Origin: Pavona decussata
Taxonomy: Eukaryota
Length of the DNA stretch: 64,000 bases
Assembly: GCA_977016875.1 (NCBI GenBank)
Contig: CDRNST010000099.1
Location: 186,001-250,000, forward strand
Reading direction: 5' to 3'
Made by a program: the position numbers and the translations under genes. The notes beneath the pieces are model-generated. The model was not told the DNA's origin, searched no databases, and saw only the letters and a list, made by a program, of their open reading frames with translations. Of the stretch, positions 4,941 through 25,982 are shown piece by piece (position 1 is the stretch's first letter; the number at the start of each line of letters is the position of its first letter).

Positions 4941-5299
4941 AAAATTATTTGCCAAAATTATTTGCACGCTTTCGTTATCAAAACTTTTTACGATATTTAC
5001 TTAATCAATATATATATTGATTGAAATATATTATATATATATATGCTTTTGTTTTGTTTGCGGTGTTAGTAATGTTGTAAGTGAAGATAGTAGTTAATAG
5101 TGTATACAGCCACATTGTAAGTAATTAAGCTAAGTAATTGTATGTTTGAAACACTATTTTTAATGGCAAATAGAGTTTTGTATTGTTAGTAGTGTAAGTA
5201 ATCTGTATTGAAAGTATTGTAATGTAATGCAAGTAATGTGTTCTTGAAAATAAAGTCTCATTTTGCTATAAAAAAAAATAATAAAAATAAAAAGACAAC
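4941..5299 (+). mobile_element. 5'-truncated non-LTR retrotransposon 3' tail with poly(A) and 11-bp TSD
   Basis: AACAATGAATT occurs at 4930-4940 and 5300-5310, flanking a T/G-rich UTR-like tract with AATAAA and an A-rich tail. Confidence 0.55.
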
Positions 5300-5404
5300 A
5301 ACAATGAATTTTGTACTTAAAACTAGTATTCCAGGATTTCCATCAATAAGGAAGCTAGGAAATGTGTAATGTTATTTAAATTATTCAATAAATCAGAACC
5401 AGAT

Positions 5405-6090
5405 ATAAATGATGCTTTTCAGACAGAGACACAGGACTTCATACCGGCATACTTAGAGTTGATTCCAATTGGAATCGAATCTATATGACCTTCAGATTAC
5501 TAGCTAGTTCTGCTGCTCTGCCCAGTAGAAGATCTATATCCAGACTTTTGTTTGAGGGATGGGTTGCAAGCTAGTATAGTGGGACAAAAAGCCACAATTC
5601 CATAGGCATAAGAAATGGATGGGTATCAGCTCTACATGCATTTTTTTTTTGCCATTGTATTGTAGAAGATGGCAGATGTGGCGCCTGAGACGTTGTCACA
5701 AAATCAATCTTGAATCAGGCTGATTAGTATACAAAAACAAATAGCTAGTCTGGACCCGCCTAAGCTATACTACCCAGCTGCAACAGCTGACTCGTATGAA
5801 CTTAGACCACTATAAATCTCAATTCATACCATAGAATTATGGTTTCTATCATACAAAAATGCTTTTATAATACCCGACTCATCAACATTCAAACCATAGC
5901 AGTGAGCAGGATGCTCAAATTATTACTTGAACCTAGTTTAATGGTGTAAGTTCCCACAAGTCTTCTGTAGCTCAGTGCTAGAGCATCTGAAGTAGTAATC
6001 AAAACATCATAGGGTCAACCTTGACTCTCGGTGGAAGCAACTCAAAAGTTTTTTTTCCCTAGATAATATGCATGTTCACAGACTGGGTTA
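5405..6090. mobile_element. Two degenerate tRNA-derived SINE-like heads in inverted orientation (~5405-5530 minus; ~5925-6090 plus)
   Basis: The plus copy has an A-box-like GTAGCTCAGTGCTAGAGCA followed by TAGTAATC...CATAGGGTCAACC. The reverse complement of 5460-5520 gives AGAGCAGCAGAACTAGCTAGTAATCTGAAGGTCATATAGATTCGATTCC. Confidence 0.45.
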
Positions 6091-7719
6091 CAACATTAAT
6101 TCCATATATTTTCTTTGGTACGTTCTTTAGAAACTTTACAAACATCGGATTTAGATGAATCAGAAGAAGGTTATGTAGAAGCCCAAGTGAGAGACAATGA
6201 CAATGAGGACATGGAGGAGGATTTGGAGGAGGCCGACAATATGGATGAAGAGGACAAGGAGAAGGCTGATAACATGGAGGAACAGGACAAGGGAAATCTT
6301 ATTTGTTGGATTTCGCTATTACTTTTGCGTCTGAAGCTGCAGTATAATCTATCTAATACTATGTTTTCTGTACTGTTAAACCTGATCTATTTTATTTTTT
6401 GGGTAATTCACCACCCTCTTCACATCTTTTTTCCCAAAACAATTAATGACCCAGAAATGATCGCAAATTTAAAGGTTCTTGATAAAACAGTAATTTTTGC
6501 TGTATGTCCGAACACAAAGTGTTCAGCTCTCTACGACATGAAGGATATTTGTTCAGAAAAGAATGGGATCAAGAGGGCGGCAGTTTATAGAAAAAAAAAA
6601 TAATGGGTAAGAGGTGTAACACAGAGCTTTCTTTTGAGAGGAACCTATCATTTGGAAAGACTAAAATTGTACCTTACAAAACCTATCCCTTTCTTGCACC
6701 CTCGGAGTGGATAAAGTCTTTTTTTTTTAAACAAGAATTTATTACTCTAATAACAACCAGCCTGAACCTTCAGCAACTGAGTATAGGGACATCTGGGATA
6801 GGCGAATTCTTCAGAAGTTTCTGATGGACCCAGAGGACAGAACCAAAGCCCTGCTGAAGAACAAAATGAACCTGGCACTTCTTCTCTACTTACTTTTTCA
6901 ATCCATTCCAACGTGCAGTGTACTCCTGTGAAGCCCTCTACATTAGCGTCCTTAACATCCCAAAGAGTAATAGGTACAAAGCAAAATGGGCCATGCTTAT
7001 CGGTTTGATACCTGATCCATCTGAGCCAGAGGGTCACATCAATACGTATTTATCGCCAATTGTTGATTATTTAATTACTATGTATGCTGAAATTCGAATC
7101 AGGTTTACGCAACACGACTCAAATATTTTTTGCTACTCAAACTTTAGACGTGGATATCTAAATAACCAATCAGAATTTCGAAAAAGCCTGACACCTTTTT
7201 GTTGATTGATGCCTTGTGAATAACACTGTGCAGCGATTTCGTTCTTCGCGCGGCATTTGATAACCGATTAATTCAATGGAACGACCATCGGTCGATTCGA
7301 GGTTCTACAGGCTCCTGGCACTTAAAAAAGGAAAAGATCGCTCAATTATATTTTTTATAGGAAACTACATTTATTAAGCTTTATAATGATATACAGTTTA
7401 TTAAAGGTTTATTAAAACTTGCGCGCGTACGATTTTTTTTCCAAAGGACACCCGCGAACCCAGGAAGTATCCTTAAAAGGCTTAAATGGAGGCACAGAAA
7501 TAAGAGAACACCACCTGGTAAGTGTTGATTGGTATTATTTTGCAAACAAGAACCATGCTGTTGACAAGCTATCTGGGTTACCAGCACTGAAGAACAATTT
7601 CTATTCTCGAGAACATATTGTAAATGTAAGGCGGTTGATACACAGAGTGGCTTTACTTCCAGTTAAAAAGAACTACCAGTTAGTGGCAAATCTTAGTTGA
7701 TGACTTGAATTCTATTCCG

Positions 7720-9500
7720 TCACCGCACGTACTAAGGGTTCACATGATATAGCATTGCGCCTGCGGGAACTCAGTGTGTTGACACCATTACAGCGAACCC
7801 TTTGGTCAATTTTCTGGCAGTCGTTTTTAGCAATAATTTGCTAGCCAACTTCGGGTTGCAAGATGCCAGATAAAGAAACGGAACATTTGACGAGTAAAGA
7901 AACGCCGGGGTGGAAGAGAAAAGCACAAGATGCTAAAAACACAGCCGAACACTTTGACGTTCATGTCAATGTCGAGAAGAATGGCGCCAAAGTTGGCGCT
8001 TCGACTGGCTCGCCTTGTGATGAAACGCCTTCGACATACCTTGTTGCGGCCGTGAAAGAGGGTTTTGCCCAGCTGTCGGGCAATATGGTTAATGCCATTT
8101 CTGAGGCATGTAAGTCTTTTAAATCCGACCTTGGGTTTTCTTTCGAGGTGAATCACGAGAGCTCTGAGTCAGACCACGAGGATGAACCCTCCGCGAAGAA
8201 GCGAGGTGACCTAAATGAGCAACGCTTATCTAAAGAATCCAGCAAGAAAACCCTTGATGTCGACAAGTCTGTTGGAAATTTGCTTCAGGGATCTCATAGC
8301 GCCTCTTATGAGGGAAAAGCGAAGTGCTTAATAGCCTAAAAAAACTATTTACAAAAGGAGGTAACGGGTCTGAATGTGGACAGCGAACTGGCGAGCATTA
8401 TAAATACCTTGATAAAAGATGGACTGCCTGAGGAAAAGCTCCAGGACAAAATGAACAAATACCACCGTCCTGGAAACTGTGAAAGCCTAATGAAGGTACG
8501 CATTAACCAGGCCGTGTAGAACAATTTAACCCCACCTGTGAGATCACAGGACGTTCGACTTCAAAAAATACAAACGTCACTATTGAAAGGTATGTGCCTT
8601 GACTGTCATGATAAACAAACTTGTGGATCAAATACCTTCGTTTCCAGCTGGAAACGAACTGCTTCAAGAGGCTACTGATGCCTTTGCTCTGATTGCTAAT
8701 GCAAATACTGAGCTTAATCACAGGCGTAGAGAGTTTATAAAGCCTGATTTGCATAATGATTACAAGCATCTAAGCTCTTCATCCCTTGCCATCACAGATC
8801 AATTATTTGGGGATGATTTACCGTGGCAGGTTAAAGATTTGACAGAAGACAATTGTGTGGGAAAAAAGATGACCACAAGTAGTGGGTCTTTTACCAGGTC
8901 TCAATGTGATTCTAGAAATCCTAGAAACTACACCTCCCGCTCCTCAAGCCATGGACGGGGATACCGGAACACATGGAAGCCTTTTTTAGAATGCGTGCTA
9001 CAACAATCAACAAACAAACCCTCCAAGGAAGACAAAGCAAGGAAAGATGAAATAGTCACTAAGAGCTGGGATCCTGTTTCTTCTGTTGATGTTGAGGTGA
9101 GCAAACACCTACAGTTGTCTAATGACTTTATTGCTGGGTGCCTGAAGCAGTTTTCCTCCCAGTGGCAGCATATTACCTCTGATCCGTTTATTCTTGATAG
9201 TGTGCAACACAACAAAATTGAATTTCTTGCTGAGTTTCAATTGAAAAATTGTTGCATAAAGGAGTGATTGAGGAAACAACCCACTGTGTTGGTGAATATA
9301 TACCTACTATATTTATTCGCCCCAAGAAAGATGGCACCTATAGGCTCATATTGAACCTAAAAAGTCTTAATGATCATGTAGAGTATCATCATTTCAAGAT
9401 GGACACTTAACAATCTGCTACCAGGCTTATGAAGCAGAACTGCTACATGGCATCTGTAGATTTGCGAGATGCTTATTACTCGGTGCCTATCGATAAAAAG
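7720..9500 (+). mobile_element. DIRS1-like (tyrosine recombinase) retrotransposon fragment: gag-like ORF + truncated RT
   Basis: The gag-like region has KYHRPGNCESLMKVRIN and DAFALIANANTELNHRRREFIKPDL...LFGDDL. The RT reads AGCLKQFSSQWQHITSDPFIL...IFIRPKKDGTYRLILNLKSLNDHVEYHHFKMDT...YMASVDLRDAYYSVPI and then breaks off at ~9497. Multiple stops and frameshifts. Confidence 0.85.
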
Positions 9501-14761: not shown

Positions 14762-16750
14762 TGGCATCTGCCACAAAAAATCTGCCTCAATTGCGCACAT
14801 GATTGTTTGGCCAGAATGTTACTGTTATCAAAATTTTATCTACCCATTGTTAAAAATATTTTCCCACATGTTTCGCATTTAAAGTGTAAGGCCCACTTAA
14901 CGCGGGGGAAAGACCTAGTTAGGGCGCTCAGGGTAAGACATTTGCAGGAAAAATAACAGACGAATGTATGGAAACATACGAAAAGCCACAGAACGTTTTT
15001 CCTTGTACAGAACGTTTTCTTGTTTCCTCAAATTTTCTGGCACGGCTGATCCCTCAAATTTAGAATTCGTTACCTTCCTATCTTTTGCATAATATTAACA
15101 ACGAGGCAACTATTTTCGCTAACATTTGAAACATTATCCGAAAACTCAGTTGGAAAAAAGCACTTCTAAACTTCCCTGCGAGACAACCACAAAATGATAT
15201 TAACCTGAGCCATCGTGGCTCCAACAAACCGGTGCGTGCGTGGACTTCTCTTCCTCACATGTATATTTTGACGCCGTTAATTTGGTTGGCTGGTTGGAAT
15301 GACGTGAAATTAAAATAAAAAAATGTTCCCGGTTACTATGAAACGATTTATTACGTTTTGTTAACGATTGGACTGACATCAGAAGCGCAAAAATGCTTCA
15401 AGCCAAAAGGTAGGGGGGGGGGGGGGTGGGTGATAGGAATTTGTTGCACTCGATTAGTATGAGTGGGTGAGAGAAGGGAAATCAATGTGAGTGCGCGCTT
15501 CATAGTGCCAAGATAACGCAGTTTGGGCAGGGGCTATGGTACGATCATCTACACAAAAAAAATCTGAAAAAGTGGTATTTTAGTGAGGGAATTTTTATCC
15601 TCACTTATCTCTTCTTTTATAGGTTCGCCTGATTTTAGAATATTAAAAAGCTTTGAATTTACTTTTCCAGTTTCCTTACTATTGTATAGTTTTGTTTTTT
15701 ATAATTCTCGCAGCGAGTTACCCGAGCTTTGTTTTTAATGCTCTGCGTTTTAGTATACCTTTTTAATGATCCTACATCATATATGCTTGTCCAAACGTGA
15801 CAGCATCTCAACTGAACAATTTAACAATTAACTAAAGAAGGTTAGTAGTCAGAATACTATAACCCACTGCGATATTTAGACGACGATACTTCATGATATG
15901 GACCCCTAATTGTATGGAAATAAATTTCGCATTCAAAATTCTGGCCAAGTGCCACATACGAAAAATATGTTTTCTTCTACGTCCGTAAAATATAATGAAT
16001 TATTCACATTGCTTTTTGGAGGGTAGACAAAGAAAAAGCTGGAGTTTATTCTTACTGGTGAAAATATAATCTTACTAGTCAAGAAGTGTTTACAAGAAAA
16101 TAAAATTAAACTTATCAGTCATACCCCAACCTTCGATTAAGCAGCCTGTAATGTTATAAGAAGAACCAGTTGTCAAAGTGATAAAAATTTCTGATCAACA
16201 GGAGCTAAGAGACATGTGGTATGTTTAGAACAAGAACGCTTGTCTTTGCCATTATCTGAAATCACACTAACATATTTTATAACATAGCTAGTAAATTTGT
16301 GTAATCAAATTCAATTGCGCGACCATGCTTCATATTCCCATTGTGCACGCTGAAGACGTCAAACAGCACCTTTGTTTTTCTTTCTTGTATTCAATCAGAC
16401 ATTAAAGTTTATTTACACGCATGAAGTCACCTGTCAGGTTTTTACAAATCTGAGATGAGATCGTTGAAGCGTAGATAATGTTTTTCTGAAACAAAATAAA
16501 CAACGCGCTGAAGCGTAGCAGAGGGAATTTCCTTTATTCAACATCTAAACTACCGTGTTGAAAACCTTATAAGACAATTGGTTCAGGCGTCAGCGTGAGT
16601 TCATCAAGATATGAAGCGTGCGGGAAGTTTGGAGTGCAAGAAAGATGTGTAAGAATTGCGGCAACTTTAGCTTCTTGAGTAATTATCAGGTTAATAGATC
16701 CATGCATATGAATACAAAAGCTAAACGTCTATAAATTCTCTTTAAAACAG

Positions 16751-17088
16751 TTGCCGATGATTCACAGGAACGACCCTCAGCGCAAGACCCACTCCTTGAC
16801 AAGAGGAACCAGAAAAAGGAAACTGACATTGGAGAAGAGAAAAAGGAAACCAGCCAAAAAAAACGAAAACTGTCCAAACAGGCTGTGTACGAAAACACGT
16901 TTGCCGATATAAAAAGCTACCAAAAAGAGGAAAATGAAAAATTTCTAAAAATGATTGAAGAGCATGGTAAAGAAGATGTTTATCTCAGAAAGCAGGAGCT
17001 TCAAACTTACACAGATTCAATGGCTCTGTTGGCCAGTGCTATTTCTGGTCAGAATACTGCCCGTACTCAGCAGCAGTTTGTTTACTGA
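16751..17088 (+). pseudogene. Terminal exon of a probable Harbinger accessory (Myb/SANT-type) gene
   Basis: Acceptor AAAACAG, then KKRKLSK and a coiled-coil-like EKFLKMIEEHGKEDVYLRKQEL...MALLASAI. It converges on the Harbinger transposase at 25.2-26.0 kb once the Kolobok is removed. Confidence 0.45.
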
Positions 17089-18225
17089 TTAAGAGAACAG
17101 CAAAACCCTCTTCAGGTTGTGAAATCAGGTTGTCAAGCTTCTTTAAATCTTTGTTGAAAAGTTGTGTTAAGGACAAGTTCTATGTACAAGGATTCTACCA
17201 ACTTCACAACAGTTACAATTTGTGTATGGTCTAAAACATTCAGGTTGTGAGAGAAGACTGAACGTTCCTTAACCTGTGAACCTTCCTCTCTAGCTATACG
17301 TTGGGTCATTAATTTCAAGGAATGTTTATTGAAAAGCTGTTTTAAGGAAACTTTTTATGTAGAATGACTTTACGTACTTCACAGCAGTTACACTCGTTCA
17401 TTTATTAAGGTGCTACCGGAGGCTAAAATCGGCAAATTTTGTATAAATTTGTGGATAAAATATTTACTGTAGGATTTGTTGAAATGACCTGAAATTTTCG
17501 CATGAAATATATCATTATATATGTAATTCGGATTTTTTATTTTTATTTCGATTAGTTTCATGGAATTTGTGGAATGTGAAGAATTAAGGGGTGTGGTCAA
17601 AAACTATATTTTGCAGTAAATGTTCTCTTAATTCTCACCAATTTAATATTACTCAAAATGAAGAAACATGTGCATAAAGATCACAATAATAAAGATTTTC
17701 AGCGCAGTCTGCCAAAAAATATTTAATTGTGACAATTTTATCCCCCAAAACTGAAAAAATGTTTATGTCTTAATTCCTCGCCTTGTCGTTTGAAAAATTT
17801 TTGGCGGACCAAGGCGGACTACGCTGTAAATTTTCGTCGTCGTATATTCTTTGGCTCTGCCGAGTTTCGTTTCAAAATAATAAATATTCTTGGAGATAAT
17901 GCTGTTGCAGTAGGATGACATTATGTAGCTGCGCCGATTAATTAGCGAAAAGGAGCAAAATCTTTCGTAGAATTCGTCTGAAAACCAAATTTTGCTTTCG
18001 TTGCTTTGGTCGCCATCTTGTGTAAGCCAGTTATACTTGGGTACAGCGGTTAAACGCAAAAGAGGTCGATAAAAATGGTCATGATCGCCATATACGTCTT
18101 GCTATTTTTCCCGCGAAACCAATCAGAACTCGAGACCATAAACATTGACACCTTTCCCTGGCAACGGCACCTATATTCCTGCGGTGTCGAATGATTCACG
18201 CACGCACGCTGCGCCTTCGCTAGAG

Positions 18226-21200
18226 ATGGACAAACAACATGAGAGTAGAGGTTTAGGCGAAGGTTCTAGGCTCTCTTTCGACTTGGAGAAATTAAAATCG
18301 CTAGGCTGGGAAGTAAAAAGAAGAGAATCTAGGTCGTCCGGAACCACGAAGGTAAATTTCAGTTACAAAACGCCAGACGGAAAAACCCTGAAATCGGCAA
18401 AAGATGTGGAAAAGTTCCTACGAGAAACCGGAGTATTTTTTCAAGTTGCCGTGGAATCAGATGAAAGAATTCCAGAAGCAAGTTCATCTGCAGTTTCTTC
18501 CGTTTGTGAAGATCCGGATTTTCAGCCTCCTAATGCCAAGGTTCTGAAAAAATCTACATCTAATAATAAGCGGTAGGTGTATTGAAGTTCTTCCATCTAT
18601 CGCGATTTCTCTGCGAACATTATAGCAGATTATAGACTCGCTATGGTTCCCCACTCAATGAAGACTTTACTTGAGTTGCTTCTAATAATTTTACATTTTC
18701 CCCACAGAATAGCTGTTCAAGAGGGTATCTTTGTGGGAATGACATCGAGCATCGTTATGCTTGTTGAAGATTTCAACCGATACTTTTGTTGTCCGTCAAA
18801 CAATCGAACCTGCAAAGGTGAGTGTTCAATATTCTTTGTTTTTGTTTTAATTTCGAGATGTTTGGTTGCCAGAAATGTGGTCCATGATACCGAAGGAAAG
18901 TAGTTGCCTGTAAAATGTCCATAGCAATATGGCAGAAAAGTCCTGTGACGACCAAATTGTTTGCATCTGTTATGCTCCAATTTCTATCTATAAAGTTACC
19001 GACGCCTAAAGCTAGCATATTGTGCCGAAATGTGTGACTTTTTAATATTCGGCTGAGGCTACATATCAGTTTTTGCCAAGTCCATTTATTTATGTGTTTG
19101 TATTAAAGCAAGTAACAAGCGAATACTCTTTACTACTTTCCTTTTGCCAACCAGGAGAAGTGGATGTGTTCGCCTTGTAGCAGTTACCCCAGGCCCATCC
19201 TCACTCTTCTTCCATTTAAAAATAACTATTTAGCTGGGCCCAGTTGTTCAAAAGCTGTATGATTTTATCCAGTAGATAACACTATCCAAGGTGTAAAATC
19301 TACTTCAAGTTAAAAAATGCATTTACAAAGGTTTTGTTACATTCCCATAATAAATATTATTATTCACATTACCTACTTATTGACTGAGTGAGAGGGCAGG
19401 ACATATTTTTCCCGGTGTGCACCCTGACCAAGGGCCAAATATTTTCCCAACCGACCTGACCTAAACCCAGTCAATAAGCATTTTATCATATGACCTCATT
19501 TAAGAAAAAAATAAGACTTTCTGGCTGTTGGAAAAAAAAAGTTTGTTTCAACTCTCATCCCACAGGGCCGGACGGCTTTTTCCAGCCCTTTTACATCATC
19601 GCAAATGGCCCTCGCATGGTAACCTAATGAATACTTTTGCAATAAGTGCACTTGTGGTACCATATAGGTCATATGAAAAAGTGTGTATATTCATTCTAAT
19701 TCACTGGATACAGTTATCTAGCCTTGAAAAACTGGGACTTGGTCAGGGCTTTTTTTGTGTGGTATAGTTCAACAGAAATGGATCTTCATAAGTTTGGCGC
19801 ACAAGGTATTAAAGGGGAAGTATCAGGGGGTTTTTGATAGCTTTTGTTAAAAATGCTGAAACAAGACCTTCAATCAGCTGCCAAATAATTCTAGAATGAC
19901 GAGAGGAACGAAATCAACTCAATTCTTGAAAGAAACAATTTTTGGAAACAAAAATGCGAGAACTTGAAAAACATTAGCCTAATATTTTTCAAGTTTCAAT
20001 CCAGACCGGCCAGTTTTATTGCACTGGGGTGATAATTTTTAAAAAAACTTGACAATTATTTCGTTGTTTCTGCTGACAGTCAAACATTTTTGGGTTTTGA
20101 AATGACAGCAAATTCTCGTGATACTTGCCCTTTAAACCCTTTTTGGTTTTGTGATATCAAGAGTGATGAGGTCAAGGTAAGAGTACAGCTTTGGCTGATA
20201 ACTCTTACCGAGTATCTCAAAAGCAAAATGTAATTATATAATATTAAGACCTTGCTTATAATTTGCATTAGGAAAACTTGTCCTTGTGGCCAGTGAAAAG
20301 AAAGGACTTGGTGGAGCCATGAAGTTCCTGTTTAGTTGCAATGGCTGTTGGCAGGAATCCATACATTACCAGAGTAGCCAGCTTGCCCTAGAGTCACGAC
20401 GTCATCTGGTGTCCTTAGCCCTATCCTTAGCTTTTTTTATAAGTGGCCATGGGTACGCATCATATAGAAAAACCTTAGGAAGGGGTTTGGGCTTGGGCAT
20501 TTTATCTGATAAGCCATTTCTAGAAGTTATCGATCTTGCTTTCCCTCACATCAAGGAAATCCTTGATGAGATGTGTGAGGAGGAAAAGGAACACATGAAA
20601 GCCCTTCCACCGACTCAGTTGGGGAGTTGGTCTCGAGGAGTAACAACATGTGATGGGTGTTGGCAGATCAGGGGCCATTTTAGTCAAAACTGTACATCTG
20701 TTATAAAAAATTATTTGACAGGGGGTCTCCTTTACTATGGGCATTTATCAATGAGAGGGGCAGATACAATTTGTAATGAAGAGTTATGGGAGGGTACATC
20801 AAAGGCTGCAGAGGGACATTTGGCACAGGTTTTGTGGGCAAAAGCAAAAGAAGAAGGGTTTAACGTTGAGGTTAATTGGCAGGATACTGACTCATCGTCA
20901 GCAAAAGGATTTCGTTAGCATATTCAAATGAGCAAGAATCGAGGATCATGTTGTGTGGGGGGCATGTAGGGAGGGCTCATGGGAAGAAGCTCTTGGATCT
21001 TCAGACCAAAAGTTCTTTTAGTAGGGCGTTTATTGACAGGCATAAGAAGGATCACCCCCATATGGACAAACTGAAGTGTTGCTGTTCTGGGAAGAAGCAT
21101 ACATATGTCGCCACACGAAACAAGCCTGCGTGTGGTTGCATAAGCCCAGCTTTCATCCAAAGTGCAAAGCGCAACCATTATTGTGCTTTAGTTCAGGCTG

Positions 21201-22627
21201 GACAAGATCCAGATAAATACAGGGATACAATGTTGTGCTTGGGGAAGTACCATTCCCGAGACATACACGAATGGGAGGGTGGTTGCTGCCAATTTCATCC
21301 TTTAAAGAAGTGTAGCTGCAAGAAATGTCAAATTGATGAAGAGGGGTTTTGTGAGGAGTTAAAGTGCCCTGGGGAAACTTATCATTCTGCCCATGTCTTA
21401 AAGTGTGAGTTTCATGCTCTGTGTTATGAAATAGAATGTTCTGCTAGGGCCTCTGAGGCAGAAAAGGTGATTGATCCTGGGTTGGAAAAGGGCCACTCTA
21501 ACCTGCCAGAATCAACATTTAGTGTCCTTACTAAGTTTAGGGCTAAGGACGTGAATCTTCACCAGAAGCACTACTCTGCTTCAACAAATTTGGGCCTCAT
21601 TCAGGCAGGCATGACGTGGTGTTTTAAGAAGAAAGGACCCAACTACCACTGGATCGTGGATTTATATTCCAGATTGGGATTGCCATTACTTGATGGCATC
21701 CAAGAAATGGTACGTCTCCTTATTCGTTTACATCCTTTAAATTTAAATTGAATATGTGTAATAGATTTATATGAATATGCAAAAGTTAACATTACCAGAC
21801 CCCTTCTCCTCTTCACATACAGACAATTAATTCTATTTTAGAGGAAAACATTTTCCCCTTGCCTTAGTGAAATCCACCAGCAAAAACTGTAGCTAATTAT
21901 CTTTGAATATCTCTCTGCAGTGTATGCATGATAATGAAGAAAGAATGAAACGACTTGAAAGAAAGAGGAGTGAAGAGGGAAAAAAGAAGCGGGTTCAGTT
22001 GAAAATCAACAGGACTGAGGAGCAAGCACTAAGGTACAGGGAGAACCATTTGAACTATACATTTGATCTAAGAAGGTTATTGGCAACTAAACGATTGGTC
22101 AAGTAAATGCCTCTATTATTCCCTTGCTAAATTGGAGGGAATGTGGTAAACTTAAATTCTTTTGTTTCCCCAATTTGAGGGAGTATTCTCTTTCTAAGTT
22201 TGTCAAATGTTTGATTACAAGCAACCTTTCTTCCCCAACAAGACTAATTCATGATCCTGATCTTCTCAAGGCTCAACTGGCTTAGTCTAAATAATTTATT
22301 GTGTAGTAACTGAAACATAATACATCTTTCTTTTGGCTGAAGTACATTTGTGGTTTTTATTCCAGAAAGAAGTATGTAAAGAACTGTCAAATAAGACATA
22401 CATATGGTAATGAAGATGAAGATGATGCATGTACTGAAGAGGATGCCCTGCTACTGACAGAATCAGCTATTGCTGATGGAACTGCAAGACCTCCTCCAGC
22501 GTTAGCACCGGTACCTGTGCCTGAAGGAGCTACCCTGGAAGTAGGAGGAAAGTCCTGTAAATGGTGTGGCAGCAGAACACATTCCAGAAAGAGTCACAGA
22601 GACTGCCCCTTTAACAAGAATGTGTAG
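18226..22627 (+). CDS. Kolobok DDE transposase with N-terminal MBD-like domain and C-terminal CCHC knuckle; 5 exons; one 1-bp frameshift
   Basis: Exons 18226-18572, 18708-18817, 20272-21709, 21921-22033 and 22366-22627 splice in phase with GT-AG. Motifs: CDGCWQIRGHFSQN, GTSKAAEG, WQDTDSSS, CGGHVGR, GHSNLPES, and a C-terminal CKWCGSRTHSRKSHRDC. The only lesion seen is a 1-nt deletion at ~20917. About 756 aa if repaired. Confidence 0.85.
19236..19737. mobile_element. Harbinger-type MITE (GGCCCAGTTGTTC end) with a probable nested insertion, in transposase intron 2
   Basis: CTGGGCCCAGTTGTTCAAAAG at the left; degenerate TTGAAAAACTGGGAC at the right. Confidence 0.5.
19813..20131. mobile_element. 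Kolobok-type MITE inside the Kolobok intron
   Basis: TTAA|AGGGGAAGTATCA ... TGATACTTGCCCT|TTAA. Confidence 0.75.
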
Positions 22628-23606
22628 TGGCCATCATTATAAACTGAGGTGTTATTATCAAATAATTTTTATTGCAAAGGAATGCTGCATTATGCCATCC
22701 TAGACCCCCCCCCCTCCACCAATAAATGTTTCTGAGCCAGTAATAAGTTACTTATGCATGCAAATACTAGCAGTGAAAATAGATGCTAGTTTTTCGATTT
22801 CTTTACCATAGGGGAATACCAAAAAAAATAATGAGGTACTGCATGATTTGATGCAAGGTGTATTTTTCAGTACTTGTCTGTCTAAATATCACGCAATTGA
22901 TTTGCCTACACATTTTTTTTCGCTCAGGGTTGTGAAAGCAAACAATAGAATAACACAAATGGCTTTCACTAACATCTTTTTTATTGTATGCCATATTCTG
23001 AATATTACAGTTTGTTGTGATCAGCTCTTTCTTATTGGTTCACAAGTTGTTTCATGGTTTGAAATCATCCAGATAAATAAAATACAGATAAAGTTTCTAA
23101 TAATTGTAATAGTATTAGTAAGACTTGCTTTAGATCAATGTTAGCTAAAATTTGCGTTTTGGTTGTTTAAAAAGTTGGTGAAGGAAAAACTAAGAAACAG
23201 ACAAACACTTTTTGCACAGGTTTTAAGCTTTTTCACTCCCAAACTATGTGAAAGTAGCAAATCAAGAAAATTTATGTTTCAGAGTAGTAACAATGTCAGT
23301 ACCATGTTATATAGGTCCTGTTCAAAAACGTTTCTTCTAGAAGTAAGCGATTGTCATCCGAGACAAATAACTCTTCTATGTTGCCTGTCTCCATAAATGA
23401 CTTTGGGAGTGAAAGAGCATTTATGTATATATTGTATAACAATAAATTAATGTAAATAGTTGATTTGGACTCAGGTAAAAAAGAAAAATATATTTTTAAG
23501 TTGCTTTGTAAATAGATACATTTTTTTACATGACTATTTTTCCCTTGATCACAAATCATTAATTATTATAATAAAACATCACTAAATTGTTACATTCTAA
23601 TTATCA

Positions 23607-24859
23607 TTACTTTGCCTTGCTTCCAGGCCATTTGGATTGGTACAAGTCACTGATAGTGACATGGTACACCTGGTTGAAAAAAAGATGCAGAAAATATGGT
23701 TGGAAAAAAGATTATAAAAAAAAAGAACTTTCACTACTACTCGTCACACATACCCATGAAAGACTATTACAGAGGGAAAAATCAGTATAAAAAAACTTAC
23801 TGCAGATCCTTTGGGGTCTGGGTAGTCAGCCAGCTCCCCACCAATAGCTTCTCGCACTGCCGCCTTGAGGCAAGGTGGATAGACATAGGTGGGGAGTGTC
23901 TTTCCTCTAAATTCCCCTTTCCCTATGCTGTTTCCAAACTGTAGAAAAAAACAAGAAGACAATATTTTGGAAGGGTTTACAAGACATTAGGATTCTAGTA
24001 TAATTTTTCCAGATCAGAGAAATAGGTTCCAGGACTGATCAGAAAAAAATGTCTTCACGTTACTCAGTTCTGCTTGTTGAATTCGCAGGGCGTATGTAGG
24101 GGGGTCCTGGGGTGCCTGAGAACCCCTTCCACCCCCCCCCCCCCCCTGTCAGAGTCAACGACCTACAAACCATATTATTCAGGCGGCGAAAAACGCACGG
24201 ATCTGAAGAATCAACATGCATAAATCTTTTCCAGTGCTGAATACTCCATTTGCCAGTCCTTCTCGCCACATGAATACTAGCGCGCTTAGAACAGTTATAC
24301 AAGGCTTGTCCCTCCCCAACGCTCAATGCCCATTTGAAAAATTGTCACTTTTTAAAACAAAGCGTGGATGTCGACATGACAATCTGGCAAGTACCCTGGG
24401 TGCGACACATTGTGACCCCCCCACCACCACCACTTTTCAAAAATCCTAGGTACGCGCCTGTTTGGTAAATAATTTTTTTTTGACCACGTGTTATTGAAGC
24501 ATGTTCGCGTAAAAAATCTTATGGCGGTGTATTCAACAAAGCAATCGTTTCCTTCAAAATTATGCAGTAATTTACAATAGTAAAGAGATAATTTGACGAT
24601 ACTTACCCACAATATGCCAAAAATACGGCAAAGAAGCCGATGCCTGCAATCTTCGCGGCTTTCACCTGGCTTTGGCTTGGCGCGCCGTAAAACGTTCGCT
24701 AAACCAGGCGGTGTTCCATCAAATCTATGTCAAAAATTGCGAGCATTTTCTATTAAACCGAAGCTTAACAAGGAATTCAATTTGAAGAAAGAAATCAGAA
24801 ACTCTCACATACCCGTTCTGACGAAATGCTTCGCCGAGTCTTGCAATGACTTCCTCCAT
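23607..24859 (-). CDS. KolX-like accessory protein, 4 exons, intact 121-aa ORF
   Basis: Exons 24859-24813, 24724-24607, 23938-23801 and 23669-23607 give MEEVIARLGEAFRQNGFDGTPPGLANVLRRAKPKPGESREDCRHRLLCRIFGILWFGNSIGKGEFRGKTLPTYVYPPCLKAAVREAIGGELADYPDPKGSAVYHVTISDLYQSKWPGSKAK*. The GKG..R..LP..C...R...P.P.G.Y pattern resembles KolX. Confidence 0.7.
24086..24460. mobile_element. hAT-like MITE in KolX intron 2
   Basis: Loosely inverted ends CAGGGCGTATGTAGG ... CCTAGGTACGCGCCTG. Confidence 0.5.
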
Positions 24860-25212
24860 ACTCTAGTCGGCTGTCTCGCGAGAAAGAGGGATTTGATATC
24901 CGAGAACCGTGGTTTATTTAACCATCAAAGGGTGTATTGAGTTTCATAACAATGATCTACTTGTTGACATGTCTGTCAGCAAAATAATCTTTAGGGATTT
25001 CTACATCTGCCCGAAACCACATACAGCGCAGCATGTTGCCTTTATTTTTCGCGCGAAAGGGCCCTTAGATACAAAACTTTCGTCGTTTATATCTCGGAAA
25101 CGCGCTGCTGCCCAGACTTTAAATTTAGCATGCAGGCTTATTTTGTTATATTCTGCGAGGCCGCAAAAAATTAACACAATCTGAGACACTAAGGTTAGCC
25201 TCCGGTACCACC

Positions 25213-25982
25213 TTAAAATGCTTGTCTAATTTCTTGCAATGTTGAATCTGCCGGGATTGCAGCACTGGCAGTACTTTCATTTTCATAGTCATCATTTACA
25301 TGCATCTCACACTCCTCCTGAAAATCATCTCCTCTTGTCTCACAAATATTATGTAGAACACAACATGCAGCAATCTTGACAGGCAAATATTTCAATGTAG
25401 TATCATTTCTCTTGAGGAGGCAGCGAAAACGACCCTTTAAACGCCCCAAGGCTCCCTCCACCACCATTCTGGCACTGCTCAGAATTAAATTGAAGTGTTG
25501 TTGTCCCATGTTCAACTCCCCACTGCCTGGAAAACCCTTCATTAGCCATCATAACAAAGGGATAAGCGGCATCCCCAATGATCACTAAGGGAATATTACA
25601 TCCACGAACGTCCTTTGTCCACTAGACAGGATAGAAATTGCGATAATATTATGTTAAAGTAAGAGGTACAAAATATCAAAGGCACAAATATTACAAATAT
25701 TTCTTCTGCATTTTTGGAAGTCCTTGAATACGTTTCTCAAACTCATTACTAACTAATGAAGTTTATGGCTCCCATGAGACACTCGCCCTTGTTGAACTGT
25801 TACTTAAATAATTAATAATAAATTATGTGGTTAAATAACATCAAGGTAAAGTGAATATATGGCACTCACATCTGGAAAGAGTTCTCCCTGTTGGCCCTTT
25901 GTATACAACCCTGAATTGCTGAAGACGCGTGCGTCATGTACTCGTCCTGGCCATTACAGAAATGATGCAATGTCTGTAGTCA
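25213..25982 (-). pseudogene. HARBI1-like Harbinger transposase, last two exons, abutting the Kolobok insertion
   Basis: Exon ~25982-25870 has WPGRVHDARVFSNSGLY. Exon 25621-25213 has IIGDAAYP...FNLILSSARMVVEGALGRLKGRFRCL...AACCVLHNIC. Frameshifts present. Confidence 0.9.

Follow-up and report, generated by a model that had tools for sequence, protein, structure and literature searches.

A Kolobok-type transposon of the coral Pavona decussata with a predicted MBD/TAM-fold domain at the N-terminus of its transposase

Introduction

As a rule, DNA transposases locate DNA by means of a THAP, BED, helix-turn-helix or similar finger. A stretch of 64,000 nt from Pavona decussata (NCBI GenBank assembly GCA_977016875.1, contig CDRNST010000099.1, positions 186,001 to 250,000 of the forward strand; hereafter the window, with positions counted from its first letter) raises the question whether such an enzyme can begin instead with a methyl-CpG-binding domain (MBD) and, if so, what the domain might do there. 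The window holds a candidate Kolobok-type transposon whose transposase gene opens with an exon resembling MBD and TAM domains. The original prediction, made from the letters alone, had described this gene as a Kolobok transposase with an N-terminal MBD-like domain that might read methylation. Its gene model has held up, but the 3′ boundary of the element, a second gene, an intact and expressed sister copy and a set of non-autonomous derivatives had been missed. Here we describe the domain, its spread among related elements and the anatomy of the transposon, and weigh what the domain may contribute to transposition.

Results

Exon 1 encodes a predicted MBD/TAM-fold domain

In domain searches, which were run exon by exon, exon 1 of the transposase gene scored 31.1 bits against the Pfam MBD model (PF01429), for which the cut-off is 21. 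A six-frame scan of the genome with the same model gave 31.9 bits for this exon and returned only six loci, namely four host-type genes and the two young Kolobok copies described below. Two relatives, P0122 and P0124, also scored above the PF01429 cut-off, while diverged copies reached 15–21 bits, at or below it. Another Pfam model, DUF7028 (PF22970), attained its cut-off on a diverged Kolobok MBD-like exon (G000:C250:1066052-1066156) and matched most members of the family below its threshold, so that this model may itself describe an MBD-like domain.

Profile and structure searches led to the same family. A domain profile built from 14 sequences (A1) matched MBD2, SETDB2, MBD3 and MeCP2 chains in the PDB (best E 0.005), and a single-sequence PDB search with exon 1 returned the SETDB2 MBD (E 0.017) and the BAZ2B TAM domain. 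In the AlphaFold (AF2) model of exon 1, core residues 21–70 had a predicted local distance difference test (pLDDT) score of 81–89, with strands at residues 29–37 and 40–48 followed by a helix at 58–68. When this model was submitted to Foldseek, the top 15 matches were all MBD or TAM domains (SETDB2, BAZ2A/B, MBD4, MBD2, MeCP2, and plant MBDs), with a root-mean-square deviation (rmsd) of ~2–3 Å. Exhaustive structure alignment (VIA) against 48,161 chains placed MBD-family entries in all top seven positions (Z 4.1–5.3), above double-stranded RNA-binding domains (dsRBDs). Because four methods agree, we assign to exon 1 a predicted MBD/TAM fold, in a domain that belongs to the transposase; the MBD-like character proposed for it originally is borne out.

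Two other candidates were considered for this exon and rejected. Gasdermin matches in the single-sequence PDB search (E ~0.01, summed over two weak pieces) were attributed to chance, since they found no support in either the profile or the fold searches. A dsRBD-like fold reached Z 3.0–4.0 and ranked under all MBD entries. No THAP match was found in any transposase exon at E ≤ 1.

The domain is a retained part of the transposase lineage

A tblastn search of the genome with exon 1 uncovered homologous open exons (35–43% identity) located upstream of a DDE core and on the same strand. At least eight diverged copies have such an MBD-like exon ahead of the DDE core, typically by 1.7–2 kb (members on contigs C57, C37, C2, C287, C6, C288, and C144); on C266 the distance is ~10 kb. 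The DDE exons of these diverged members are 70–73% identical in DNA. Close homologues of exon 1 with precomputed PF01429 annotations were also present in other coral assemblies.

The fusion was shown independently of splicing by P0068, a single intronless open reading frame (ORF) of 755 aa from the first ATG, which comprises an MBD-like N-terminus, the DDE core and a CCHC knuckle, in this order. The P0068 element (positions 5031–9357 of locus L058; ENA assembly ERZ21781341, another organism) is 4.3 kb long and has a perfect terminal inverted repeat (TIR), GG..CC termini and TTAA. A more diverged version of the domain was recognized by the family profile (E 2e-7) in Exaiptasia diaphana RefSeq proteins of 609 and 756 aa, annotated as “uncharacterized”; this version was not detected by Pfam. 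The domain is missing from other clades of this transposase family (P0052, P0060, P0090, and P0111). We conclude that this Kolobok lineage inherited the MBD-like domain from its ancestor and has kept it, in the place taken by a THAP finger in other Kolobok transposases. As a side observation, fragments of the eukaryotic transposase of the P0068 cluster have been deposited as bacterial proteins of metagenome-assembled genomes (Alphaproteobacteria, Pirellulales), probably because host DNA was binned into these genomes.

Boundaries, insertion site and copies of the element

A scan of the window identified inverted arms at 17405–17426 and 25195–25216, which are 22 nt long and 95% complementary and each contain a TTAA. 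The element therefore spans 17409–25212 and is a Kolobok transposon of 7,804 bp; its TIRs measure 18 bp, its termini are GG..CC, and the duplicated target site is TTAA (Table 1). These arms bear out the intact TIRs and TTAA target-site duplication reported earlier. Position 22627, however, which had been taken as the end of the element, is merely where the transposase stop codon lies, and the right TIR follows 2.6 kb farther on.

The insertion interrupted a Harbinger/PIF remnant. The right flank (25216–25542, minus strand) corresponds to the C-terminal part of a DDE_Tnp_4 transposase remnant, another part of which forms the left flank (16700–17408); to this extent the earlier remark that the element sits deep in a nest of transposable elements was correct. 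In a paralogue on C426 (L080), 92% identical to the Harbinger sequence, both flanks are contiguous, with a 7-bp difference exactly at the site. The TTAA-flanked TIR occurs 103 times in the genome, versus 0 occurrences of the reversed control pattern. Given the contiguous flanks in L080 and these counts, the TIR pair is not a chance inverted repeat.

A search of the same genome for other copies returned an intact, full-length one with 99% identity on contig C90 (L002, 1501–9295). It has its own TTAA and a perfect TIR, and the sequences around it bear no relation to the flanks of the window copy; it therefore arose by transposition and not by segmental duplication. The alignment of the two copies contains 85 differing columns, one of them an extra T that L002 has after position 20917 of the window. 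The repeat nested in intron 2 (Table 1) has dozens of genomic matches and an RNA-contig depth in the thousands, and the element transposed with this repeat aboard; an Rfam scan of the element found no RNA family. In the more distant member on C288 (L081, 1846–9379; subfamily 2), too, the MBD exon is enclosed by perfect 18-nt TIRs, and TTAA is present. A third, older copy at G000:C354:839239-844696 (L003, L004, L006, L007, L011, L033, and L048) is 88–95% identical; its MBD exon is interrupted by a stop codon, and part of the 3′ region is inverted.

Shorter relatives of the element are also present. In ~19 cases, TTAA-flanked TIRs form pairs 1.78–1.85 kb apart (e.g., G000:C20:79822-81662 and G000:C36:1131246-1133086), a spacing that points to a non-autonomous derivative family. 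These ~1.8-kb elements are probably deletion derivatives mobilized by the MBD-bearing transposase.

The copies also bear on whether the locus could be a host gene, i.e., a domesticated transposase fused to an MBD, or whether the exon was captured in this copy alone. The Exaiptasia homologue, annotated in RefSeq as an ordinary uncharacterized protein-coding gene, would agree with a host gene. Against both possibilities stand the TIRs and TTAA at every full-length copy examined, the different flanks of the 99%-identical copies, the existence of several subfamilies with many deletion derivatives, and the location of the MBD exon inside the TIRs in every full-length copy examined. We therefore regard either possibility as highly improbable.

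Gene model, expression and DDE core

The transposase is encoded in five exons of 347, 110, 1439, 113, and 262 nt (2271 nt together), giving 756 aa and a stop; the value of 1439 nt for exon 3 is its deletion-repaired length. Contigs from four runs of four studies were aligned to 18000–23999; the runs are labeled “RNA?”, a label supported by the splice joints. The GT..AG joints 18572/18708, 18817/20272, 21709/21921, and 22033/22366 were found in 4/4 runs, and a single contig of 2,265 nt carries all five transposase exons in a row. Transcript contigs also cover 18000–18572, that is, the upstream part and exon 1. The first two of these joints had been predicted, as had in-phase splicing from exon 1 through the DDE core to the CCHC knuckle, with which both the length arithmetic and the RNA contigs agree; exon 1 encodes the peptide quoted for it at the time.

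The frame of the window copy is broken by a 1-bp deletion after 20917, where L002 and all transcripts have the extra T; judged against L002 and every transcript contig, this is the single 1-bp lesion that had been noticed before. In L002 exon 3 is an uninterrupted ORF of 488 aa, and exons 4 and 5 are likewise open. Since the L002 frame is intact and the extra T is present in all transcripts, the window copy is the broken one. The transposon is young and transcribed, and the MBD-Kolobok family is probably still active, because the 99%-identical sister copy is intact and spliced mRNA with an intact frame was found in four studies.

Across 15 homologues, residues D123, D200/D202, C224-x-x-H227, and E409 of the core are invariant. 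H323, H328, C335, H338, and further Cys columns are invariant or nearly so in the same set and form an H2CH/Cys-rich zinc motif before the E. A 210-aa fragment of the core from the window matched the Pfam “Mutator-like” family PF20700 (E 1.4e-10). Unlike this fragment, the intact 488-aa exon-3 ORF of L002 gave no Pfam match, which we treated as a filter artefact and not as evidence. In the Cys4 motif that spans exons 2 and 3, C18 and C21 of exon 3 are invariant, and the motif is contiguous in the intronless P0068. The CCHC knuckle is kept in P0068, P0062, and P0151.

A TTAA duplication was found at the window, C90 and C288 copies and at L058, and GG...CC termini at the window copy, L002, L081, and L058. 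Kolobok elements have 5′-RR...YY-3′ termini, unlike piggyBac (PMC9587614), and their transposases usually carry DDE, THAP and H2CH motifs (PMC6004289); the original prediction, too, had named THAP or Zn-finger modules as their more usual start. The THAP N-terminus, usual and not universal among Kolobok transposases, is not detectable in this element, and the MBD stands in its place. The TTAA, the GG..CC ends, and the DDE core with CxxH and H2CH are those expected of the Kolobok transposon proposed at the outset.

Contact residues, CpG pattern and methylation reading

The methyl-CpG contact set of MBD2 we take to be R166, D176, Y178, and R188 (two Arg fingers, an Asp and a Tyr). In the profile alignment to MBD2 these positions correspond to S35 (R36 with a one-residue shift), N44, S46, and K56 of the transposase. 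The contact columns vary across the family (N/H/Q/F/R, S/K/Q/T/R, and K/W/T/N). Judged from the alignment, the domain appears to have the MBD fold with the canonical methyl-CpG reading set not kept, and methyl reading is unproven because the canonical contacts are replaced, not conserved. The caveat made earlier, that MeCP2-type contacts looked altered and that the domain might be TAM/SETDB-like, agrees with this result, the closest relatives being the SETDB2 MBD and the BAZ2 TAM. The suggestion that the domain reads methylation and steers insertion is not supported, as other residues stand at the contact positions and differ between family members. Moreover, the CpG of the TIR is TpG in the sister subfamily, which argues against a methyl-reader role.

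We also determined the observed/expected (o/e) ratio of CpG along the element. It is 1.0–1.6 over the 5′-terminal ~1.2 kb and the 3′-terminal ~0.9 kb, and 0.07–0.6 in the interior, introns and untranslated regions (UTRs) included. The same bimodal profile was seen in L002, in the diverged C288 copy (L081) and in L058. Going by base composition, the pattern is that of a body which has long been methylated, set between two protected ends resembling promoters. For the ±600-bp flanks of three full-length elements, a small sample with no proper null, the ratio was 0.20–0.59 against a local median of 0.65–0.77; the L058 flanks, which have no matching background, gave 0.14–0.15.

These results bear on the view that the domain is a true methylation reader, which would bind methylated CpG (mCpG), or mCpG/TpG, and steer integration to methylated gene bodies or repeat-rich DNA. 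The strongly CpG-depleted interiors (0.1–0.5), seen alike in the young family, in the diverged subfamily of the coral and in the relative L058, imply that the elements were long in a methylated state and would suit such a reader. So would the CpG-poor flanks of the three elements of this genome and of L058, the position of the window copy within another transposon, the Pfam MBD score above the cut-off, and the precedent of a functional MBD captured by a transposable element and guiding its insertion (PMC6673714). On the other hand, the positions of the four MBD2 contacts are occupied by S(R), N, S and K and are variable in the family, the closest relatives are the SETDB2 MBD and BAZ2 TAM rather than MBD2 or MeCP2, and the flank sample comprises 3–4 elements without a proper null. 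On balance we consider a true methylation reader unlikely. Equally doubtful is a more elaborate version, with the domain as a sensor of methylation or of methylation decay (mCpG/TpG) that guides the transposase to such targets, and with methylation-free, CpG-rich ends that keep both promoters active. If it held, this would be the first methylation-guided DDE transposon, naturally intact and expressed.

A second gene convergent to the transposase

The 3′ 2.6 kb of the element contain a second, spliced gene on the minus strand, convergent to the transposase (22705–24859). It probably consists of four coding exons for ~121 aa (Table 1), a model in which only the last junction is RNA-verified. RNA contigs spanning 22705–23667 show that its 3′UTR runs to ~22705 and meets the 3′ end of the transposase gene. 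The 46-aa exon is kept in every subfamily and in L058, always downstream of and convergent to the transposase, and ~200 bp of the 3′ subterminal region are kept between subfamilies.

Exon-by-exon searches with the second gene gave no Pfam or PDB match, an ESM-Atlas feature search was uninformative (scores ≤0.80), and a word search returned only a 66-aa partial Porites protein. Its identity as KolX or P2X7 ballast (PF20478) was not confirmed: in addition to the missing Pfam and PDB matches, hhalign against the C-terminal P2RX7_C exons of the same genome gave a probability <1% (pairwise E 0.057 over 17 columns).

Table 1. Features of the Kolobok-type element in the window (positions of the window; strand “.” where none applies).
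Feature	Position	Strand	Remarks
Left TTAA target-site duplication	17405–17408	.	flanks contiguous in paralogue L080
Left TIR, 18 nt, 5′-GG end	17409–17426	+	one mismatch (C at 17413) to right TIR
5′ subterminal region, CpG-rich (o/e 1.4)	17427–18225	+	presumed transposase promoter and 5′UTR
Transposase exon 1	18226–18572	+	MBD/TAM-like domain, ~residues 11–75 (18256–18450); then acidic linker with ED-PDFQPP motif
Transposase exon 2	18708–18817	+	first half of Cys4 zinc-ribbon-like motif (rest in exon 3)
Nested high-copy repeat, ~320 bp, intron 2	19814–20131	.	in both young copies, not in older C354 copy
Transposase exon 3, DDE core	20272–21709	+	D 20652–20654; D 20883–20885 (and 20889–20891); CxxH 20954–20965; E 21509–21511; H2CH and Cys-rich insert; 1-bp deletion in window copy only
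Transposase exon 4	21921–22033	+	basic Lys/Arg-rich stretch, possible nuclear localization signal; joints in 4 RNA runs
Transposase exon 5	22366–22627	+	acidic tail; C-terminal CCHC knuckle (22556–22609); stop
Second gene, last coding exon	23607–23669	-	20 aa and stop; CT..AC joint 23669/23801 in 3 RNA runs; kept in diverged copies
Second gene, 46-aa exon	23801–23938	-	most conserved part, 16 invariant columns
Second gene, inferred exon	24607–24724	-	39 aa ending FGILW, then GTAAGT donor; kept in diverged copies and L058
Second gene, inferred first coding exon	24813–24859	-	starts MEEV; kept in C288/C266/C144 subfamily
3′ subterminal region, CpG-rich (o/e 1.1–1.3)	24860–25194	-	presumed second-gene promoter
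Right TIR, CC-3′ end	25195–25212	-	
Right TTAA target-site duplication	25213–25216	.	

Discussion

In DDE transposases, DNA binding is generally the task of the N-terminus. Building on the demonstrated anatomy, splicing, fold, conservation and recent mobility, we infer that the domain binds DNA and suggest a role for it. In our opinion the element is probably an autonomous two-gene Kolobok in which the MBD/TAM domain serves as an N-terminal nucleic-acid-binding or tethering module. Its binding would most likely be methylation-independent, because an N-terminal position is typical for DNA binding and the nearest relatives are of TAM/SETDB type. From its N-terminus, the transposase is ordered as the predicted MBD/TAM fold, an acidic linker, a Cys4 ribbon, the DDE core (with CxxH and H2CH), a basic stretch and, last, the CCHC knuckle. 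Within it, the MBD-like domain may bring the protein to DNA, either to the element's own ends or to chromatin generally, and would bind in the TAM/SETDB-like manner without dependence on methylation.

Several observations weigh against this interpretation. The placement among Kolobok-type transposons, suggested by sequence hallmarks, was made from these and not by comparison with Repbase references, and the only Pfam label for the core is “Mutator-like” (PF20700). The fold-match statistics are modest in absolute terms (Foldseek E ~0.01, Z ~5), as the domain is small. A k-mer scan of both element ends detected no repeated subterminal motif beyond the 18-nt TIR that could serve as a binding site. 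Finally, the best structural match, 8hfp (SETDB2 MBD), is bound to protein and not to DNA, which makes a protein-binding role possible.

The last point leads to another explanation, in which the domain would be a protein-interaction module that recruits a host chromatin factor or the second protein of the element, in the way of the SETDB1/2 MBD and C11orf46, with no nucleic-acid binding. It would account for the SETDB2 MBD, complexed with its protein partner, being the top match in both the structural and the single-sequence searches, and for a conserved second gene that always accompanies the MBD-bearing transposase. Yet the generally DNA-binding nature of DDE transposase N-termini speaks against it, and we hold this explanation to be rather improbable. 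We retain nucleic-acid binding or tethering as the preferred function.

The family is experimentally tractable, since it offers an intact, spliced and expressed copy, a conserved partner gene and ~19 probable deletion derivatives of recent origin. It allows a test of the MBD fold in end recognition, or in chromatin or methylation targeting, during transposition, and it may give cnidarian geneticists an active Kolobok element to work with. The contrast between CpG-rich ends and a CpG-poor interior, conserved across subfamilies and species, also bears on the methylation of mobile elements in invertebrate genomes.

Comparison with known systems

Kolobok elements and an MBD captured by a transposable element (Copia) were known already; what appears to be new is the predicted MBD/TAM fold on a DDE transposase. 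A full-text literature search found no description of a Kolobok-MBD fusion, nor of any DDE transposase with a captured MBD. The accessory modules listed for Kolobok in a lineage review are DEDDh, PD-(D/E)xK, His-Me nuclease, RecQ and KolX, and include no MBD (PMC9587614). In a survey of fusions between transposable elements and reader domains, mainly Chromo and PHD were reported, and MBD only for the Copia case (bioRxiv 10.1101/2021.11.30.470311).

With the Kolobok superfamily (Kapitonov and Jurka; Xenopus families in PMC6004289) the element shares the specific 4-bp TTAA duplication, 5′-RR..YY-3′ termini, short TIRs, and a DDE core in which CxxH lies past the second D and ahead of the E and is followed by an H2CH/Cys-rich zinc motif. 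The two-gene layout, with a separately transcribed second gene, is common to the Kol0 lineage (transposase and KolX). The element differs from the superfamily in its N-terminus, MBD/TAM here versus THAP, and in its second protein, which is not recognizably KolX/P2RX7_C.

The MBD of arthropod CopiaMBD retrotransposons binds dense methylated CpG and guides insertion (PMC6673714). Common to both systems are a protein of a transposable element with an MBD-family domain and a host with mosaic or gene-body methylation. CopiaMBD is, however, a long terminal repeat retrotransposon, whereas the carrier here is a DDE cut-and-paste transposase, whose putative DNA-binding domain is without the canonical contacts. 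The likeness to the SETDB1/2 MBD and BAZ2A/B TAM domains lies in the best sequence and structural matches (8hfp, 7win, 7fhj, and 7mwl; rmsd 2–3 Å over 45–60 residues) and in a YKTP-G--L(K/R) core. Those domains belong to host histone methyltransferases and remodellers, in contrast to the domain described here, which is fused to a transposase and has a conserved RG-G--SR motif ahead of it.

Chromodomain-bearing Ty3/gypsy elements (chromoviruses) offer a further parallel, as mobile elements that gained a fold of the chromatin-reader type; they differ from the present family in the reader fold, the element class and the level of evidence. A whole Kolobok lineage, from corals, sea anemones and another organism, carries a predicted MBD/TAM fold at the N-terminus of its transposase, which suggests that reader-type folds have been recruited by cut-and-paste elements too and not by retrotransposons alone.

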